Origin: Saccostrea cucullata
Taxonomy: Eukaryota
DNA length: 64,000 nt
Assembly (NCBI RefSeq): GCF_032062105.1
Contig: NW_026938715.1
Coordinates: 186,001-250,000, forward strand
Reading direction: 5' to 3'
This document shows, piece after piece, positions 17,601-63,201 of this stretch. Below the pieces are notes generated by a model. It did not search any database. It was not told where the DNA came from and saw only the letters and a list, made by a program, of their open reading frames with translations. The translations under genes were made by a program, and so were the position numbers. Each line of letters starts with the position of its first letter. The stretch's first letter is position 1.

Positions 17601-20600
17601 AAAAGTCCCTCGTTATTATGCTTTGTTTTATGGATAAATGTTGTACAATTGATCTCCAAAGTTTTCTTTCGCTATATTTTTCTAGTTATGAGGGGGTATA
17701 TTCGTATAAGTTCAGGCGCGGATCATCAGATCAAACTCGACGCTTCGCATCTGTTTGAAATTCGATGTGATAAGACCCTTATCAAGTTACTGTTATAATA
17801 ATATATATTTATTATATACCTAACGTGTATCACTCAATTTTACTGTAGAATTAACGCAATCACGTGACGTCGTGATCCGACTTTTCGGATCACCACACTG
17901 TCGTTTTCTGAATCCATATCACCACTCTCTGAAACTGATGACGTATTACGCAAAAACATGACGTTATTATTTTTTTTTGCACGTTAAAAAGTCCATTGTT
18001 TTTATGCTTTGTTTTATGGATAAATATTATACAATTGATCTCTTAATTTTTATCTTGCTATATTTAGCTAGTTATAAAGGGGTAAATAATAAATTCATCA
18101 TTATAACAGTTTCCAAAGAATTTTTACGTTTCAAAAAATTTTGTTATAATAATATATATATCTAGAATGTTGTCTATTCCAGCCAATTTCTTTGGAACCA
18201 GTGGTCAAGCCGTAAATCTGGAAATTTTTACATCCATTTTATTTTGCAAACTCGGGTCAAAATGCTGTTGTTTAATTTTTACGTTTCAAAATTTTGCAAA
18301 TGACCACTGCTTTGTTTACATTTTCTTATTGCTAATTTATTTTAAAGAAAAATATTTTTGCGAATGCAGTGAAAATTTATCTACAGCAAAAATTTCCAGA
18401 TTTATGGTACACGTTTTGCTGTAATCCACAATTTACCTCCACTTTCCTGTGTGAATGATCCACCATGTCTAAATATGGAAACAGTTCCCTGAGTTGATCT
18501 ACAGTAGTGATGTTGGTGAAGCCCAGGTCCCGGGCGATGCCCTCGATGGGCCCCTGCCCACAGATCAGGGTGTGCATGTTGTGGAAACGCTTAAACATCT
18601 TGAGTGGACTGTGGGACATCACAAGCTGTTCTGTACTAATCTACAAAACAGTCAGAAAATACATTTAATGTCAAATTAAAAAATATTAAAAGATTAAATA
18701 ATTAAACATTCAATACAACAAATGTACTTAGCTATCAAGACCATGTATATTACCGGTTGGCAAAAAAGTGCATCAATAGCAAACTTTCAATTGTTCAAAT
18801 CAAACCTCATGATAAATTTACAGAAGAAAAAATACAAATCAAATGAGAGTCAAATTGCACTGTTTACAAACCCTTTCCAACTTGCATAAAAATGTGCTAT
18901 TTCATGATGCACACATGCCAGCATCATTGATTTAAAAATTCATCTACAATCCAAGAGGCTCATAGGACCTTTTCTTATACACCTTGCTTGGGTCTCTAAG
19001 GCCTAGAAGATGAGATTCTGAGATTCACTGACTCATGGATAGGGCACAATTCCACTGCTGGTTTACCACCCCCCACCCCCAACCCCTACCCCCATAAGAG
19101 TTGAATGAAGACAACTGTACACAACTACAAATGTCCATAAAGGGGTTTGAGCCAGTGACTGATCTTTACAATTACTGGCCAGGTACCTAATCATTGATCA
19201 TTTATGCCTCACAATCAAATCAGCCTTTGTTATACTTTTTTTATCAATGGCATAATTTCTTTATTTTTAAATAAAAGAATTATTAAAAGTACAAAAGGAA
19301 GATATGTGAATTAATAATATCATGGTACTTAATTTTCATTTAATTCATATTTTACAATATTTAGTTTTTCAGCCAGTGCAAGAAATTGTTAATTGAATAA
19401 TTGACACTTAAAATTTATAAATATCTAATGGTCATAATTAACATGATAAAGTAATGATCAATATATTATACATCAATGAGCACATGATGAGTAAAACAGG
19501 TATTATGTCACATCAACTAAGCTGCCATCATTAACTTGATACAGCATCCTATTAAAGTAATATTGTCAGATATACTATAGTACTAAGTACTAACGTACAT
19601 TCACTCTAATGATTCACCTATAGGTGTAAACAATGTACCGTATACTATTACTTCATACAGTCATTCATGTAATAGTTAGATCATATTAAGTAAAATTTTA
19701 GTGGTTAAGAAGGGGCGGAGGGAGCGAAGCGACCGAGCCCCCTTCTTAACCACTAAAATTTTAGTTAATAATGATCTAACTTACTTAGAACCTATCGCGC
19801 TTTTTCATTGGCTAATTAGTCAGCCCGCGGAGATACTGCGCCAAAAAATGGGTTAGAGGTCAGTTGAAAACAATTAGGCCTAAACATGGCAGGTTCTGGT
19901 GACGAGAGCGACATTTTTAAGGATGTAGACTTTTTACTCTGTGACTTTTTACCGGATGATGATTCAGATGGTGTTTTATCGCAAAGCCTTGTGAATATTC
20001 CCACTCAGCAGCTTTTCAAGGTAGAAAATGAGACCGATCATGTAAGATTTGCATCGCCCGTGTCGGGAGCGGATCTCAAAATTAAGCAAGCTGCCGGGAT
20101 TCCGAAAAAGACTCGCCAAGCAAATAATTGGGCAGTCCGTTTATGGACAGATTGGGCTAGATTCAGAAATACAAGACCCGAGACATATATGGAAGGTGGT
20201 GTTATTTCTGAGAATATATGCGGTCTTTCAAATGAAGCTTTGAACTTTTGGATGCAACGATTCATAATAGAAATTCGCAGAAAGGATGGAACGGCTTACC
20301 CCCCTAATACGTTAACTCAGATTGTAGCTGCATTACAGCGGTATCTAAGGAGTAATTGCGATGACAGGCAATTTAATTTTTTTAAAGACGACGATCTTGT
20401 TTTTCGGGATTTTAGAAAAACTCTGGATTCACATATGAAAAGCCTGACTAGTCAAGGTATCGGTGTAAATAAGAAGAGGTGTGATCCTGTCACAGAAACG
20501 GATGAAATGAGGATGTGGGAGACAGGAGTATTTTCTTTAGAAACAGCGTCAGGATTGAGTAATGCAATTTTTTTCTATAACGGTAAATGTTTCGCATTCC

Positions 20601-23600
20601 GTGGAATGAGTGATCATAAACAATGTGACGCAGACCAGTTTGAAATCGGATTCGATCATGAAAATTCTCGTAAGTATGTTAAATATACTCCAAGGGTAAC
20701 AAAAAATGTGCAGGGTGGCTTAAAGCATCGCAGAATTGAGATAACACCTATAAAACATTATGAAGATAAAAACAATCCAAGGTGTCTAGTTATTCTGTAT
20801 GAAAAATATTTGTCTCTTATTCCACGTGTGGGGCCACTTTACAGAAAACCTTTGGATTCTACCGGACCTCATGGCCCGAAATTCAGCGCCAATAACATTC
20901 CCATGAACCAAATGTCACAGATGTTCAAAAAGTTTTTTAGTCAAGCCGGAATTGATACTTCTGATAGGAATATTTCAAATCATTCAGGACGAGTAACGTG
21001 CTGTACAAGGCTTTACAATAATGGATTTTCTGACAAGGCTGTTGTGAGTCGAAGTAATCACCGAAGCAACGCGGTTCATACGTACCAAAGAGAACAGTTT
21101 AAAATTTTGCAGGATATAAGTAATACGCTTGCGCCACCCGCACCTAGAGATAACGCTATTAAATCGGAACCCGTGTCTACTGTTGTAAAATCTGAATCTG
21201 CACCATTTAATAGAGAATCTGTCCCTGCATCGGAACCCACCCCAGCCATTCCATTTGATCCTGAGAACAGTGAAAACAACACACTAACGGTCTTTGTTCC
21301 TTCTGGAGTTGACTGTATCAAAATTATAAAAGATGGCAAACACATTTCTCTAAATATTTGAATTCTGAACAAAATATTTGTATTTTCTTCAATAAAATGT
21401 TTTTTTCTTCATCATTTACTCTCATGATTTTTTGTTTCACAGCTGGCTGTCAATCAAAATGTCACGTGACTAAAGATTTAGACAAAAAATCTTAACAATT
21501 AAGTGATCCACTTAATAGAAAATTTAGCAGCTGCTGATTGGATGAAAAAGCGGGTTAGGTTCTAATCAATAATAAACACAGATTGAGAATTTTCTATTTA
21601 GATAATTCTGAAACATGGGTGATGTTTGTTATTGATCAATGAAAAGGGAAGAATATCTGTTTACATAAATGCATGTCTATCATCTGTTGTTTTGTTTTGG
21701 ACATTTGGATACATGTGATATTATAAATGTCACATTCCACGATTCGGAGCTTGTTTACATCGTATAATTAATTCAAGCTAACATTTGTGTTATCATTATT
21801 TTCATAATATTTATGACGTAAATTTTCTCTCTACAGTACTACACACTTTTTTTTAAAAAGGTCAATGCTATAAGTATTTTTCATTAATACATAACGATTC
21901 CTGTTTTTGCTAGAAACTCCAGTGTGCATAACCTTGGTATTGCTGATATGGTATAGGACATTTACCTTCACAAGTAGAACTAGAATTATCCTGTTATTTT
22001 ACTTGTATAAGTACTGACAATCTTTATTCAGGTGCCTTTTTTTACCTAACAATTCTATTTTCAGCAAGTAAGCCAAATTTATATATGCAAGACAGCTAAA
22101 ATGGCCTAGGTATTCATGTATTTTAATGTCACATCTGACAAAAGAACAATGTCGACAGTTTGTTTGGAGCCTTCATTTCCTTGAAATTTTTTTAGCTGTC
22201 AAAAATAATTGTGGCTGTTTAACTTCTACTGAATAACATTTCAGTCCTTATATTTTAAATATTTTGCTGAATAATGATTTTATCTAAAGCTACTAAAATA
22301 ATTTCATTAGCAAATTTAACATGATTCCATTTTAATTCCTTTAATGAATGATAAAAAAGAATCTTCCTTCACCAATTTTCCTTATAAATACATGTATATA
22401 TACACTGTGTTGTAATAAATAGGTGTGCGTTTTAAAAATCTGTTGAAAGAAACTAGCTTATAATTCTCTTTGTGAGAATGGTGACTGGTCCACTGCACAG
22501 TAACTATTTAGTCTTAGATAAAGATTTTGAAATCTTGTCTTTACATTGATGAAACTGTATGTACACATAATCTTTTCAAATCTAACAATAGCCAAAGTTT
22601 TTCGTCTAACTGAATGAAAATGAGGGTAGGGAAAATAACCATCTGGTACACTATCAAGAAAAACATCTGTCTGCCTACCTCTGTAACTTTAAAAATTGGA
22701 AATCAATTCAAAACATGACCTATAATTTGGAGGGGGGGGGGGGGGGCAATTTTTACTTCAAATAAGAGGACAAATTTCTTGCCATTAAAAAGTTAAGGTC
22801 AAAATTAAAGTTAATTTGACCAATGACCAGCGTTCAGTGGGTCACTGTCAATACATCTCTTTGTCCCCTTTGAAAATATGGCTATGACAAGTATAATCAC
22901 TTTTCTGAAAATCACCTTGAACTTGTATTGTTAATCTTAGGTCAAGATCTTGAAAAACTCTCTAGTCATAAATACAGGTGTCACTGTCAATACACCTCTC
23001 CCTCCCCTTTTCAGGCCATGAAGAAGTAATATTTAATTGTGTGAACTATCTTCTCAATTAAGAAAATATGGCCAGAACTTTTAAATTTATCTCCCCTATC
23101 AAAGGGTCATCCCTCCTTAACTCCTCACCTTTATTCCTAAAAGTTCAGAAAGCTCGTCAGCTTTGGTTTGTCTAAATGTGTTCCCTGCATTCGTAACAAA
23201 TACAACTGGTAGTCGAAACTTCCCCGATTCGTCGGTCAGGAGCTGGAATGCCTCACGGGCTGACGGAAGAATACGCTTTCCTCTCTTGATCACGCCATCA
23301 ATGTCAAATAAAAATCCGAAATCATGTCCTCTGTTTGACTGAAATATAAACAAAATGAAAATTTAAATAATGTATATTCTACTTATCATGATGCTTATAT
23401 ATGTATTAACTGTATATGGTCAAATACTTCAACTTGTTCAATCTGTACGTTTAAAAAAATTAGTAAATGTTAAGGGGAGACAGGGCACATGTCACATGAC
23501 TAAAAAGACATATTACGTCATAATCGGTGATGATATACATGTTAAACGGTGTAAAATCAACAGTTCTTGTGTAAATTTATTCTAAATTCTAAATTAAATT

Positions 23601-28664: not shown

Positions 28665-30760
28665 GATCTAAGCAACAGTAGCCAAGTTTTAATTAAACCA
28701 ATTGACTACACTTTGTCCAAAGTACATGTAGCTTTACAAAATCAAATACAGTTCAGTGATGTTGCATCAATTTCGAAAGGGGTGGGGATCAGAGGAAAAA
28801 AGGAAAAATATATCCAAACTCGAAATTTCTATTTTGTGTGTGCAGGGGGGGGGGGGTGTATAAAGGCCAACTTCTTTCGGTACCATATTTTTTATAAATC
28901 AAAATACTACCGGGTATGTTTATTTCACTAAACTGCAGCAAAAAGTTGAGCTGGCCATGGGGTGTGGAACTGGACTTTTAATGAACATTTATTATACCAT
29001 AAAGGTGCACATATAGCACTTCTACTGCAGCAGAACTGTAGCTCTCCGAAAAAACATAATTGACAGACCGGAGAGCTACAGCTCCCAATTGAAAATACTA
29101 CATACATTTATTGCGCACAACTGATGTAAGAATTTGGAAGAATTAATACAGAAACCAGTGGATGGCACTGTAGCTCTGGATCCGGTCTGTTAATATATGT
29201 AAAAGGATTTTGAAACCAATTTGACATCCCCGGTTGAAAACCTTATACTGCGATACAGGACATGCACTCGCCTTGACATTCCATAATATATGAATGTCAA
29301 TGGGCTATAGATAATACTAGAAAATAATGTAAGAGAAAAGAGAAGTTCATTGAACTTAAGTATTTTGGTTTTAAAAAAAGAATGCGTTTCTGGTATAAAA
29401 AGTGATAACAAATTCTGAGACCTTTCTGCACATTTAACATTCCAAAACATGGAAGGACCATAGGCGCTTGGTTACAGGATGGTGTATTTTGTGTATTATG
29501 TGTTTTTATATACAGTAAATATGACATTTTAAGAATTTTTATTTTTATTTTAATGAGGGTATTCAGACACACCTAGAAAAACATATAATACACGAAATAC
29601 ACCATCCTGAAACCAAGCGCCTATGGGAAGGACTACTTACACTCGAAAAAAAAATCTGCAAGAGGAGTTTATGGAACCTGAATTTTATTGGAAAACTACA
29701 TTTGATGTTGAAAGAAAATTTAAATTTTTCTACATTCACGTGTGAAGGAAACTCCAACATTTACATTAATTAAGGACAGATGATACAAACAAACTTTTGT
29801 CCAAAAATTTGAAAACAACTTGGACCATGTTTTAATACTAGTAAGTAAAGTGAACTGCGACAAGTTCCACATGTACTTTTTATTTTTTTATTCAAAGTTT
29901 AGATTTGAAGTGAAAATATTTGTACAGATTAATAACGGTGGTTTCAGAAGGGTAGACTTTTGAACATCACAGAAAGTTTCCAATTTCTTTATATTCTAGA
30001 AATTTATTTTTTGCATCACATGCAATTGAAATTAGGGCAAAAAATATACAAATCCAGGCGTCCATTTTTTGTTTGTCTCATCTGTCCATAAAGTATACTT
30101 TGGATTTTTCATCCAGAAAGTGGATGAAGGTGAAGCCCGTCCATTCTCTAAATAGAATAACTTTGGGTGTACAAGGGTTCTTCAATGACTTTTTAAAAAA
30201 CAAAATATTTGTCTATGACATATTCACAACGTTTTACTACTGAAAAATCCAAAATTTAAGCTAAAACTAGCCTTCTATAAAAATCATACACTCTGATACT
30301 AAAACCGAACCTGGAATTCTATTCGTAATTTCATAAGTTAATTTATCAAGTTGGATTCATGCATCACATAGTTACACAATAAAGAAAGAGGACCAAAAGC
30401 GAAAAGATCGTTTCATATTGTTACAGTGTTGTAAGAGCGATAACTCGAAAACAAAAATCTCAAAGAATACGTGAGTTATCTATCTTTGATCAGTACTCTC
30501 CAGTGAATTTTTTGATAGCGCGCAATATTTATGCACGGAGCACACGGATTACATCAAATGTGAGTATTAATTTAAGAGTGAGAAACAATCTTTGTGAAGG
30601 ATTTTAATAGGCTATTTAGTACGATAAATAAACGATTATTTAAACAGAAGCAAACAATAAACACGAGTCGTCTGCTTTCATGCACATGTAAACAAACCTC
30701 GCGAGATCGCGCGAACTGTCAAAGTTATATATGCTGAAGAAACTTATTTTTTTTCCCCAG

Positions 30761-33135: not shown

Positions 33136-35275
33136 TGTAAAAAAATTGTTTAAATTATGGTCTGATTTCACACTTTACTGAGTTTATGTCAAAAACAATA
33201 CATCAAAATTGTAGTGTTTGTAGTTTACTTGGTATCCATTCTCTAAAAATTTCATTTAAACAATATATTGCTTTCTTTGTTTGTTATTACTGGAATTAAC
33301 GGAAGCAGCTGTTGCAGAAAAAATACATAACCCGCTTATGCGGGTTATGTAAATTTTTTCTGCAATAGCTGCGACCGTTAATTCCAGTAATAACAAACAA
33401 AGAAAGCATTTTATTGTTTATATTTATATCTGTTTAAATAATCATTTAAAGTAGGATTAAAAAGATTGATTATTGTATTAATGATGCGAACGTCTTTATA
33501 CGTTTCATTGATGGAACAGCCACTGATCAATCTGAAATCTGTATTCAGTGGATGAAATAAAGGAGAAAATATATAGTAAATATAGATTGATGAATAGATA
33601 GCTGCAATTATTGTGTGGGAAAATGATATTCTGGTAAATTTTCTTTCCTTTTTTTTTTTTAAATTTATTAGTTAATTTAATCCAATTTTTTAAAATTAAA
33701 AAGTTAATTTATTATCTCTTTTTTTATAAGACAAAGACAGCCCAGAAGCCAGTGTTGGACAGATCCCTGAGAATCATAACTACAGACCTAGCTGGGATAC
33801 AGAACTGGGAACACCTCCGAGGGGTGTTCACTTTTCTGTTTGAGATATTTGGTAAGAATATATATTTAACTCAAGTTTGATGTATTTTATTGTACATTTC
33901 TTAAAATGAATACTGCAATAATATTAACAAGTGATTGGTAAAAGCTTTATTTAAAAAGTTACAATACATTTAAATGTTTTCCTTTATTGACTTTTTTTTT
34001 TTCAAAAGATTTGAATTGCATAAATTGATTTAAAGATACATGTAGATTTAAAAATACTATTATTTTCTAAACTTGAAATATTATTATTATAAGAAATTGA
34101 TTATCTATATTTGATTTTTTTTTTTATTCAAGCCCAGGTGAATTCTGCAACAGTTAAGGTTCCAGATGTTGATGCCAAAAAGTTTTCAATCAAGGAGGAT
34201 AATGCATCTATGAACTGTATCTTCTATGAAATTGTAAGGTTTACAGTACTAGTGCATCCTATAACAAACTTTAAATATACATGTAATATGCATGATTTGA
34301 GCATGATTGGTTTCACTTAACAAATTTTTTGCATAATTTTTAAAATACAACATTATGATTAATTTGAATTCAGGTACCATAAGTTTATAATATTTTAATT
34401 CTTATTTTTCTCACTAGAAACTATAACCAATTGCTATAAACCAAGAGTAAACTTTTTAATTAAATTGATTATTGTGATAGATTTGATTGATACATTGTAG
34501 GATCACTGTCTACCAAAGCTTACCAGAGGAAAAATATACAGGTATTTAAAACTTAAAAAAGACCTCCTCCCTGAACACTTTTAAGAAAATTACCTAACAT
34601 ACATAAAGTCCCTATATACACAATATTGTATTTTATACACATAACTGAAGATTAAAGAAAAATAATTTCATTATACCCCCCGCTTCAAAAGCGGGAGGGT
34701 ATATGGTAATCGTCCGTCCGTCCGTCCGTCCGTCCATCTGTCCGTCCGTCCTGTTGTTACGCTTTGGGGTACCCATCTCTTATCCGCAACTCCTCTCATA
34801 CCACTGAATGAAATTTGATGAAACTTTCACAGAATCTTTATTACATATTGCCATTGTGCACCTCCTATTTTACTTCTTGATCCGACACATATTTTGGGTT
34901 TCCCGGCCACAGGAAAACATGGACTTTTTCACCAGTTAAAACCATATGGGAGGCGGGGGGTATCATTTAGTGAGCTCATCGCTCACAGTACCTCTAGTTA
35001 ACAATTATTGTCATATACAAAAGCAATCATAATCCAAAAGTAGATGCATTGAAAGTATCAATTGTATGTATTTGTCAAAATGATAAGCTAAATAAGATTT
35101 ATAGTTTCTGATCTTTTTTGACAGAATTGTGGGATCCTATGACAGCCACCAAAATTTGATCAAATGTGTGTCGATCCGAGAGGCCATGCAGGAGGAGCAT
35201 GTAGCTCATCAGAAGAATGTGGAGGTGTGTGCAGAGTATAAACTGAAGCTCTCCAGTCTCGTCAGGGAGCAGTAA
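30761..35275 (+). CDS. SPATA22: Spermatogenesis-associated protein 22 (meiotic OB-fold partner of MEIOB), 8 coding exons
   Basis: N-terminal PLVPIFNCKKRTR motif. Exons 30761-30884, 31178-31325, 31714-32485, 32633-32767, 33731-33851 (SLRII...LFEIF), 34133-34233 (CIFYEI), 34501-34541 (DHCLPKLTRGKIYR), 35125-35275 (IVGSYD...KCVSIR, TAA). Phases are consistent. Confidence 0.9.
31556..31626. repeat. 71-bp near-perfect palindrome (mini-MITE)
   Basis: 33-bp arms ATCCTTTGAT.CGCTCAC.TAGATCGCTACACA around a 5-nt loop. Confidence 0.85.
33104..33134. repeat. poly-C tract
   Basis: About 31 consecutive C. Confidence 0.9.
33257..33420. mobile_element. Long palindrome (~80-bp arms), probable non-autonomous Crypton-like end
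   Basis: TAAACAATA..TGCTTTCTTTGTTTGTTATTACTGGAATTAACGG mirrored around ACATAACCCGC-TTAT-GCGGGTTATGT. Confidence 0.65.
34671..34998 (+). mobile_element. Non-autonomous Helentron-type (HINE/DINE-1-like) element
   Basis: Subterminal IR ATACCCCCCGC / GCGGGGGGTAT, (CCGT)n microsatellite, 3' hairpin GTGAGC..GCTCAC, ends CTAGT in a TT context. Confidence 0.8.
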
Positions 35276-61704: not shown

Positions 61705-63201
61705 TTATCACATGACCGACAAATTTTTCTTTGATCTTCACAAGGGTGTATTTCTCATATGAACAAAAGTGTTGTGATATATTAAATATCACATATGTGA
61801 TATAAAGCTAGTGATATCCAACCGTTATACCCTAGATGTAGGAGGAGCTATGCAAATGAGACAAAAATTCGTTTCTAGATTTTAATGAACTAACAGAAAC
61901 AAGAAAAAAACACACACAATACAGATAGTTAACACAGTTTAAATCAAAATGCACAAATCTTTACAAAACAAGACACTGACACGGTCTAGCGGAGCATTTC
62001 TCGAAGCGGATAGCTTCATCTCCCATAGGAATTCGCACATTCAATGGTAGTTTCCTTTCGGGCATCCTCTGAAAAGTTCATTTCATGAACACTTTGCTCT
62101 TATGCACAGTAGACTATCGGAACAGATTTGATATAAAGTTCTCGATCGGGGTAGGGAAATCCGTATGCACCCCTGGCTTCAATTACAGTGTACAAAACAT
62201 GATATAGTGTTCGAAAGTTCTTGGTATATAAAAGAGAGTATTTCGGGAATGATTTTAAACTCACCAAGTTGTTGTTTCGCTGAGATTTCCAGTCGTTGAA
62301 CACTTGAACCATGTTGACTGCCCATGAACTGATGAATTGTTACGGCGTGTGGTTTTACTTTCTTGATTTTTTAAGCGCACTTATTTCACTGGCCGACACA
62401 TGTTTTCCGAATCTGTATAGCTAGTATATTCAGTCCATTCCGTAAAATTTTCCCTTTTCGATTCCGGAAATGATCCCAAACACCAACACGGTAAATCGAA
62501 ATTCATAGAAGTCCTGGCCACATGGGCCATTTTTAAATCCGATCGCCTGAGTTCATACAATGTGAACTGCTTGACTCGATTGAAAATGATCCTCGTCGTA
62601 GGCTTGCTGCAAAAAGGCCATTCTTTACGCTATAGACCCCTTCTACTACTTTCTCCAAATCCATAGAATACAAATGAATTGATTATCTCAAGAAAATGAT
62701 CACGTGGTACAGTACTAAGAAAATTTACCAAATTTGTAAATCCGTTACTTGGATACCAAAAACCCTTCGCGTTAAGACTATCACGTGGTTCTGATTCAGA
62801 GTCTTTATTAGTTGATACAAAGAAAATACCTAATATGGGAAGAGGTCAAATGAAGGGTCATGGGATAAATCAGTTACATGATTGACAGCTCGATGATGCA
62901 TACAAAATATCGTTTCGTTATTGAAAACTCGGAGGCTAACGCCTCCTCGCGTGCAATAACTCAACGATATTTTGTATGCATCATCTCGTGTCATCATGTA
63001 ACTATTACATACATTACCGAAAAAACAATATATAGCAAAACATGGACATTATAGGAGGCGGGGGTATCATTTAGTGAGCTCATTTCTCACAATCCTTCTA
63101 GTCGATATGCAATATCACTATCAATATATCACAACACTTTTGTTGATATGAGAAATACACCCTTGTGAAGATCAAAGAAAAATTTGTCGGTCATGGGATA
63201 A
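61705..63201. mobile_element. Composite element bounded by 79-bp inverted repeats, containing a Crypton remnant, a second hairpin and a Helentron 3' end
   Basis: Arms 61705-61783 / 63123-63201 (~2 mismatches); hairpin 62872-63003; Helentron end 63045-63102 matching 34915-34998. Confidence 0.75.
62100..62420 (-). pseudogene. Degenerate Crypton recombinase N-terminal fragment
   Basis: RFGKHVSASEISALK/NQESKTTRRN/SWAVNMVQVFNDWKSQRN...VIEARGAYGFPYP aligns by eye to RFASPVSGADLK...KKTRQANNWAVRLWTDWARFRN...IIEIRRKDGTAYP of the 19886 ORF. Confidence 0.75.

Follow-up and report, generated by a model that had tools for sequence, protein, structure and literature searches.

How does a Crypton move? To our knowledge, no eukaryotic DNA transposons other than Cryptons are believed to depend on a tyrosine recombinase alone, and we know of no case in which the transposition mechanism of Cryptons has been worked out; their ends have been described as featureless. 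They are ancestral to several conserved animal genes (ZMYM2-4, QRICH1, KCTD1 and KIAA1958). The question is raised by a complete CryptonA element located in 64,000 nucleotides (nt) of the oyster Saccostrea cucullata, positions 186,001 to 250,000 of contig NW_026938715.1 (this whole stretch is referred to as the window, and its numbering is used throughout). Animal Cryptons have been reported to carry no terminal repeats, direct or inverted, even when 50 copies were compared, and Cryptons generally have only direct repeats of 4 to 6 bp (Kojima & Jurka 2011, PMC3212892). In contrast to those published animal Cryptons (PMC3212892), the element described here has a subterminal hairpin, an internal complement of its far terminus and a defined dyad target. 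The best reading of its sequence, to which we give an even chance, is that the strand carrying the open reading frame (ORF) would fold into a recombination site comparable to integron attC or to that of CTX phage.

Anatomy of the element

The initial annotation had called this element a Crypton, and its assignment as a CryptonA-type tyrosine-recombinase transposon is secure: it is a multicopy element with sharp ends and a single long ORF, whose product matches DUF3504 (3.8e-18), QRICH1 (1.1e-13) and, in its C-terminal half, Phage_integrase (1.6e-8) in Pfam. The catalytic set R..HxxR..H..Y is conserved in an alignment with mollusc homologues, i.e., R239, HxxR (NHSGR, at about 366-369), HRS and the Tyr of HTYQRE. 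The last two motifs (HRS and Tyr) are absent from a likely domesticated relative in Latimeria in the same alignment. Among named proteins, the closest matches come from Saccostrea cucullata (96%), Ostrea edulis (63%), Patella caerulea (50%) and Mercenaria mercenaria (45 to 52%), and a sequence search of the PDB with the recombinase gave nothing except human QRICH1. As in other Cryptons, there is one DUF3504-related tyrosine-recombinase ORF without reverse transcriptase (RT) or DDE transposase (Goodwin et al. 2003; PMC3212892), no target-site duplication, a short identity between target and end, and an abundance of nonautonomous derivatives (PMC3212892). A DIRS1-like retroelement was rejected, as Pfam found no RT domain and only the internal complement of the joined ends is held in common.

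A DNA search of the same genome recovered another full-length copy (99.6% identity), several 5' fragments and dozens of nonautonomous derivatives of ca. 260 bp in which 19669-19839 is joined to 21479-21565. These derivatives have lost the ORF and retain exactly the hairpin, B and B' (see below). No target-site duplication was seen among the copies inspected. The element is intact and probably recently active. One nonautonomous copy lies within a poly-A transcript, with a consistent loose-end consensus on both sides (at 19669 and 21565) in RNA runs X22 and X23, and the full-length ORF is covered by only one or two RNA reads.

The termini were fixed by aligning 27 left and 21 right ends of genomic copies. 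Homology begins at G19669 (GTAATAGTTAGATC...) and ends at A21565 (...GGTTCTAA), and the loose ends of public reads and contigs, at 19667-19669 and at 21565, match these copy-defined ends. The boundaries therefore include both the hairpin and B', the latter being the exact right terminus, as had been proposed from the window, and the hairpin lies 5 nt in from the left terminus. The left end, placed before at about 19671, had to be moved to 19669, at the GTAAT. The two pairings held up. Arms A and A' form a palindrome of 108 nt (self-BLAST E = 9e-25), with a core of 32 nt at 97%, and B, which starts after a gap of 3 nt past A', is complementary to B' at 22 of 24 positions (self-BLAST E = 4e-4). 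Because B sits internally, the extreme ends of the element are not inverted repeats of each other.

When the ends are joined directly, they read GTTCTAA-GTAATAG-TTAGATC. The internal site had been described as the inverted copy of this junction. That is true of the boxes, which are mirrored, but not of the spacer: with the left terminus at 19669, the spacer of the joined ends is 7 nt (N7) rather than 5 nt (N5), the spacer of the internal site. Junction and internal sites are thus inverted copies of each other, except for a surplus of 2 nt on the junction side. The coordinates of all these features are collected in Table 1.

Table 1. Coordinates of the features of the Crypton element in the window, and of places with joined ends on other contigs
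Feature	Position	Strand	Basis
Complete CryptonA element, 1,897 bp	19669-21565	+	More than 40 same-genome copies and read loose ends
Left terminal pentamer GTAAT, junction-side spacer; crossover directly 5' of its G	19669-19673	+	25 of 27 copies
Hairpin arm A, with box TTAGATC at 19676-19682	19674-19716	+	Pairs with A'
Hairpin tip: minihairpin GCGAAGC at 19724-19730, flanks GGAG at 19717-19720 and CGAG at 19734-19737	19717-19736	+	
Hairpin arm A', with box GATCTAA at 19773-19779	19737-19781	+	Pairs with A
Internal site GATCTAA-CTTAC-TTAGAAC, inverted copy of joined ends, 5-nt spacer	19773-19791	+	
B, internal complement of the right terminus	19785-19808	+	22 of 24 complementary to B'
CATTGG (inverted CCAAT-box-like), 75 nt 5' of the ATG	19806-19811	+	Sequence reading
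Segment missing from the ca. 260-bp derivatives	19837-21482	+	Same-genome copies; joints 19837/19839 to 21479/21482 in reads and contigs
Tyrosine recombinase ORF, 491 amino acids	19886-21361	+	Pfam matches, conserved catalytic residues
GATTGG adjoining B', same orientation as the motif at B	21536-21541	+	
B', right terminal 24 nt, ending in box GTTCTAA at 21559-21565	21542-21565	+	Pairs with B; copy-defined end
Joined-end places	C15495:10135, C15547:12005, C16608:24108, C23851:1467		Genome pattern search

The sequence ATTGG is found just inside both B and B', in the same orientation, in Saccostrea and in Ostrea (L073), and at B' only in Mercenaria (L075); the pair is a direct repeat within an otherwise inverted arrangement. 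The CATTGG next to B is a possible promoter element.

Covariation between families and signs of strand-specific folding

A protein search of the same genome found hundreds of candidate Crypton loci with 31 to 52% identity to the recombinase. Nearly every one of them has a palindrome of 93 to 143 nt a few hundred bases 5' of the ORF, and the sequences of these palindromes are unrelated. Hairpins of 81 to 143 nt with unrelated sequences are present in at least 15 families, and the one in Patella has 42 nt. Termini could be fixed from many copies in four families, namely, that of the window, L057, L050 and L039 (for the last two, conclusions rest on alignment coordinates). The elements of all four start with GTAAT, GTAA or GTA immediately before the hairpin, and GTAAT, GTAA, GTA or GTTAT precedes it in other families and species. 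B lies 1 to 3 nt past the hairpin, and its complement B' makes up the last 13 to 24 nt of the element (24 nt in the window family, 13 in L057, 13 in L050 and 18 in L039). Three further families, with single or few copies, fit the same scheme: L059 (9 nt), L073 from Ostrea (22 nt, 18 matching) and L075 from Mercenaria (25 nt, 96%). B' is the copy-defined right end in four of these seven families. Their junction-side and internal spacers measure 5 versus 3, 5 versus 3, 3 versus 1, 4 versus 2, 5 versus 2, 5 versus 3 and 4 versus 1 nt, i.e., all seven have a surplus on the junction side, of 2 nt in five families and of 3 nt in two.

More distant relatives preserve parts of the arrangement. The hairpin is present in Mytilus, with a degraded B/B' pair (21/28), in a distant Logan contig (27% identity) and in Patella, whose locus yielded no B'. 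The box-5 nt-box layout of the internal site occurs likewise in Ostrea and Patella. Local inverted boxes of 7 nt were considered as a universal feature and rejected, since they are clear in some families only. Position is kept and sequence is not, which amounts to covariation at the level of families. Covariation of A with A' and of B with B' had been put forward as a check on the initial annotation, and both pairs covary across families and also across mollusc species. As far as sequence comparison can tell, the same positional arrangement in seven families with unrelated sequences is far beyond chance.

The two strands of the hairpin are not equivalent. We folded the ORF strand with DNA parameters after circular permutation (last 60 nt followed by first 170 nt) and obtained a single predicted stem of ca. 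85 bp at -69.7 kcal/mol, compared to -62.1 for the bottom strand. The dumbbell envisaged initially is replaced by one long bulged hairpin, and instead of a mismatched spacer, the surplus appears as a 2-nt AT bulge, 3 nt past the crossover, which is the only interruption predicted at the junction. Other families behave alike, with the predicted bulge 1 to 3 nt after the crossover. The top strand was predicted to be stabler than the bottom one in 16 of 20 hairpins. Within 15 representative hairpins, the ORF strand has CGAG 27 times and CTCG once, while the rest of the same loci has 106 and 105, respectively. The CGAG sites are found beside the tip and 12 to 20 nt above the base of the hairpin. 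Their positions mirror each other exactly, which places CGAG opposite CGAG and creates two G.A oppositions closed by C:G pairs. Overall, the hairpins have ca. 32 G.A oppositions versus ca. 4 C.T.

Tandem sheared G.A pairs in a pyrimidine-GA-purine context are a stable DNA motif. The tips follow a pattern of their own, CGA, a covarying GC stem of 4 to 6 bp, a loop, the complementary stem and GAG, in which the loops closed by C:G are GAA, GCA, GGA (GNA), GTTA, GCAA or TT. This grammar is found in at least nine families, with a near-identical loop in a family from Mercenaria. GCGNAGC minihairpins and d(GNA) loops with a C:G closing pair are extraordinarily stable DNA structures (PMC13037366, PMC3201870). 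A palindrome that only served for binding as a duplex would need neither complementarity along whole arms, nor CGAGs in direct orientation, nor covarying tip stems, and these features therefore favor folding.

Other palindromes were seen in the window and in related loci. A second Crypton-type hairpin of 132 nt, belonging to the L041/L042 family, lies on the minus strand at 62872-63003, with four CGAG on that strand; it is preceded by GTAAT (left end at about 63004-63008), and the element would extend leftwards from ca. 63008. This family also has a palindrome of 794 nt (82 to 83%) just 3' of the ORF (L042, 2461-3226; L046, 743-1506), and its B' was not found within the loci. Another family (L036, L038 and L040), with 48 to 52% amino acid identity to the ORF in the window, carries an extra palindrome of ca. 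120 to 130 nt and of another type, 300 to 600 nt 3' of the recombinase ORF (L036, 996-1127; L038, 766-897; L040, 2662-2780). Three long palindromes of 170 to 180 nt without CGAG are located at 33254-33423, 47365-47535 and 29458-29626 of the window, with 90% self-complementarity in the first two; all three may be foldback elements of another kind or miniature inverted-repeat transposable elements.

Target, crossover and joined ends

The flanks of the copies have a marked composition. On the left, T predominates at positions -5 (18/27), -4 (20/27) and -3 (21/27), A at -2 (21/27) and A or T at -1 (23/27); on the right, T predominates at +7 (14/21) and +8 (18/21) and A at +9 (15/21), with a binomial p of about 1e-6 at each of positions -3, -2 and +8. 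This composition describes a target dyad, TTTAW^N6-TTAA, that resembles the joined ends, TTCTAA^GTAATAG-TTAGATC. Families L057, L059 and L050 have the same tendency, and in 26 of the 35 L050 copies the element directly follows TTAA or TAA. Target and end share a short identity, between the left flank TTTAW and the right end TTCTAA in the window family. In an L043-like family, many copies align from 3 to 6 nt before GTAAT, with flanks resembling TCTAA or TCTAT, so the identity of the target to the right end TTCTAA is longer there.

The crossover is sharp. At most two of the ca. 155 copies of four families depart from a common starting base at the left end, and none of the 21 right flanks starts with GTAATAG. 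The spacer measures 7 in the junction but 6 in the target, and the crossover is where the left box meets the spacer. Tyrosine recombinases cleave the top strand at the border between the spacer and the box to which they are bound, and we tentatively assign the crossover to such a cleavage at the left box. A staggered second exchange 6 to 8 bp away would leave a heteroduplex, from which half of the insertions would emerge with GTAATAG on the right and without it on the left. Two-strand exchange over a 7-bp overlap and coupling sequences like those of Tn916 were both rejected, given that no right flank starts with GTAATAG, that left ends are not shifted and that the target TA(A) directly abuts GTAAT. 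The flank pattern would be consistent with the exchange of one strand, resolved by replication.

Joined ends of the window element would read ...GGTTCTAA followed directly by GTAATAGTTAG... When the genome was searched for the pattern of this predicted joint, four places were returned, all of the form GGTTATGTTCTAA-GTAAT-AGTAAGATCAT, and none with the reversed control. From that GTAAT on C15495, a copy of the L043-like sister family extends on the plus strand, and the 13 nt preceding the GTAAT align to the complement of B, which identifies a true head-to-tail junction of the sister family with direct abutment. The four places probably represent one or two events present on several contigs. Two other candidates for joined ends were discarded. 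A loose end, TAGGTTCTAAGTA, before 19674 in run X2 proved to be the opposite strand of the internal site, its spacer being 3 nt. The three nonautonomous copies in tandem at C18246:38224-39192 (L017, L026 and L027) have a period of 352 bp and each has the same 92-nt flank, i.e., derivative and flank repeat together in a segmental duplication that includes the insertion.

A proposed folded-strand recombination and its alternatives

The cis-acting site that we propose is a composite palindrome, B'-GTAAT-A-tip-A'-TAC-B, complete only once the two ends meet, whether by joining or by juxtaposition. What we observe is the element's anatomy, its covariation and strand asymmetry, its target and the single crossover; folding in vivo, the source of single-stranded DNA and the chemistry are what we infer. 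The ORF-sense strand would fold by pairing A with A' and B' with B, and the two stems would stack, leaving the termini a few nucleotides apart, flanking a 2-nt bulge inside the rebuilt box-spacer-box core (GTTCTAA/TTAGATC). In the joined form, the same pairing would give a continuous bulged hairpin containing the core. A recombinase dimer on this core would cut the ORF strand between TAA and GTAAT, and the cut strand would be swapped with the top strand of a core-like duplex target (pseudo-core). A single strand would be exchanged and the intermediate resolved by replication, as in the recombination of integron attC with attI or of CTX phage attP(+) with dif. The surplus of 2 to 3 nt or, equivalently, the too-short 5-nt spacer of the internal site would make only the junction side cleavable. 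A wider claim is that animal CryptonA elements move as ORF-sense single-stranded DNA, with ends paired within the strand (A/A' and B/B'), only the folded strand being cut and joined at the bulged core and replication completing the process; this we advance tentatively, at clearly less than an even chance. For the idea of folded DNA, already present in the initial annotation, the G.A oppositions with their CGAG sites, the GNA loops, the bulge and the single crossover are circumstantial evidence, but no single-stranded or circular intermediate was seen in the contig and poly-A RNA runs.

Several known systems resemble parts of this scheme. Integron attC sites recombined by IntI (PMC2727003) share with it the tyrosine recombinase, an imperfect palindrome conserved in structure and not in sequence, one strand as the substrate (predicted here), unpaired or extrahelical bases by the crossover that set the choice of strand and site (likewise predicted here), a one-strand exchange resolved by replication (presumed here) and a sharp crossover beside a G. 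However, attC sites are bacterial and shorter, and the cassette has no recombinase gene, whereas folding here would join two transposon ends. The attP(+) of CTX phage and its dif target for XerCD are similar in the imperfectly paired center, the exchange of a single strand pair (again presumed here) and a dyad target of the TAA-N6-TTA type, but the recombinases are encoded by the host and the packaged single-stranded genome supplies the strand. Val et al. reportedly described in 2005 that two inverted core-like sites ca. 90 nt apart on one strand of attP(+) fold into the hairpin substrate, much as the two sites are proposed to do here. In the left-end hairpin of the parvovirus MVM, a "bubble" with arms of unequal length (GA versus GAA) picks the active one of two mirror sites; the similarity is an analogy only, as an HUH nickase and a replication origin are involved and not a tyrosine recombinase. 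In DIRS1-type elements (PMC13465315), too, part of the interior is complementary to the joined termini, the recombinase is related and a circular intermediate is presumed. They differ in having RT and long inverted terminal repeats and no terminal hairpin, and their internal region is thought to act in the synthesis of complementary DNA. Integrative elements of Vibrio that use a tyrosine recombinase are reported to circularize with a strand bias (PMC9345347); these elements are bacterial and multigenic, and the comparison is weak. A full-text literature search, which did not cover repeat libraries, found nothing describing a Crypton with this hairpin, palindrome or attC-like architecture, in oysters or otherwise. 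As far as we could find, the architecture is conserved and undescribed.

The site might instead act only as a duplex. The element would then move in double-stranded circular form, B, B' and both arms of the hairpin would be recombinase binding arrays (core plus accessory), like the arms of lambda attP or the accessory sequences of Xer, the internal site with its 5-nt spacer would be an uncleaved architectural or decoy site, and the one-strand exchange would be resolved by replication or by host enzymes. The recombinase is indeed a canonical tyrosine recombinase, the junction core is a classical box, 7 bp, box, the target is a dyad of the duplex type, and the short identities between target and right end (TAA, TTAA and TCTAA) are like those of other Cryptons (PMC3212892). 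However, binding arrays require no complementarity along the whole arm, yet arms of 40 to 65 nt remain complementary even though no sequence similarity is left from one family to the next. CGAG in direct orientation at mirrored positions of the palindrome would be odd for dyad-symmetric binding, the stems at the apex show covariation and end in GNA loops with a C:G closing pair, and G.A is far above C.T on one strand. We consider such a duplex-only site unlikely, if deserving serious attention. A recombination of the kind carried out by FLP on the 2-micron plasmid, offered initially as the alternative, would have the junction and internal sites recombine and flip part of the circle for amplification. 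The joined form does hold two inverted core-like sites, but their spacers differ by 2 to 3 nt in all seven families, which is incompatible with productive exchange between them. In addition, the asymmetric loop is inverted relative to the ORF in none of the 27 copies and has one orientation in all families, and CGAG is on the ORF strand in all of them, by 27 to 1. The probability of such an inversion is close to nil.

The hairpin might have nothing to do with recombination. One possibility is a function in RNA or transcription, whether as a promoter containing GC and CCAAT boxes, as a structured leader at the 5' end of the transcript or as the precursor of a small RNA; the proximity of the hairpin to the terminus would then be incidental. 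There is a GC box, GGGGCGGAG, in the tip, and the CATTGG lies 75 nt upstream of the ATG; fold signatures are on the sense strand, where G.T(U) oppositions are tolerated, and Rfam gave subthreshold matches resembling microRNA precursors. However, these matches are far under the gathering scores and on the other strand, RNA coverage over the ORF is very low, and the derivatives without ORF keep the hairpin and have been amplified to dozens of copies. The hairpin being 5 nt from the end of the element, a promoter borne by the element could not transcribe it unless the ends were joined, and an RNA leader has no need for a B that pairs with the far terminus. Tandem pyrimidine-GA-purine mismatches are a hallmark of DNA rather than RNA folds. 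The same holds for GNA triloops (PMC13037366). Altogether, we find a role in RNA or transcription quite improbable. Alternatively, replication of an extrachromosomal copy (single-stranded or rolling-circle) could originate at the hairpin or be primed by it, as in single-stranded DNA phages or parvoviruses, and the hairpin would not itself be a substrate for recombination. Strand-specific minihairpins of the GCGAAGC type occur in the origins of single-stranded DNA phages (PMC13037366), and the strand asymmetry of the hairpins would fit. However, the element has no gene for a replication protein, and both termini lying at the hairpin base, together with an asymmetry of 2 to 3 nt exactly at the crossover, point to recombination. 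We think an origin of this sort very unlikely.

It should be noted that several observations weigh against the folded ORF strand as the recombination substrate. No joint from 21565 back to 19669 was found in two contig runs and two poly-A RNA runs, which is weak evidence, since rare forms are lost from contigs and the joint would not be expected in RNA. The exchange of one strand could also start from a duplex circle, so the flanks do not prove a folded donor. CGAG could be a sequence-specific duplex binding site, the GC-rich CGAG/GNA tip is absent in L074 from Patella, L075 from Mercenaria and L058, and the ViennaRNA energies leave sheared G.A pairs unmodeled. Clear 7-nt inverted boxes at the junction are confined to the window family, L043, Ostrea, Patella and L075 from Mercenaria, and the termini in other species come from single copies. 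Finally, the derivative L012 (C21005:872984-876154) has a left flank of 13 nt, AACTATAGTTTAC, that recurs 8 nt past its right end, after GGTTTGTA. The latter resembles the B' end, and the simple model leaves this duplication unexplained.

Whichever way the element moves, a precise and testable cis-architecture has been gained, with exact termini, four boxes, a 2-nt asymmetry, a target consensus and a minimal derivative of 260 bp, and the question of how Cryptons move becomes open to direct experiment. If true, folding of the ORF strand would make these elements the first eukaryotic counterpart of the integron attC and CTX phage pathway, with a DNA-fold grammar of their own (CGAG/CGAG and GNA tips). 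A folded-strand strategy known only from bacteria and their phages would then operate in animals too, through a compact pair of recombinase and site whose specificity is set by DNA structure.

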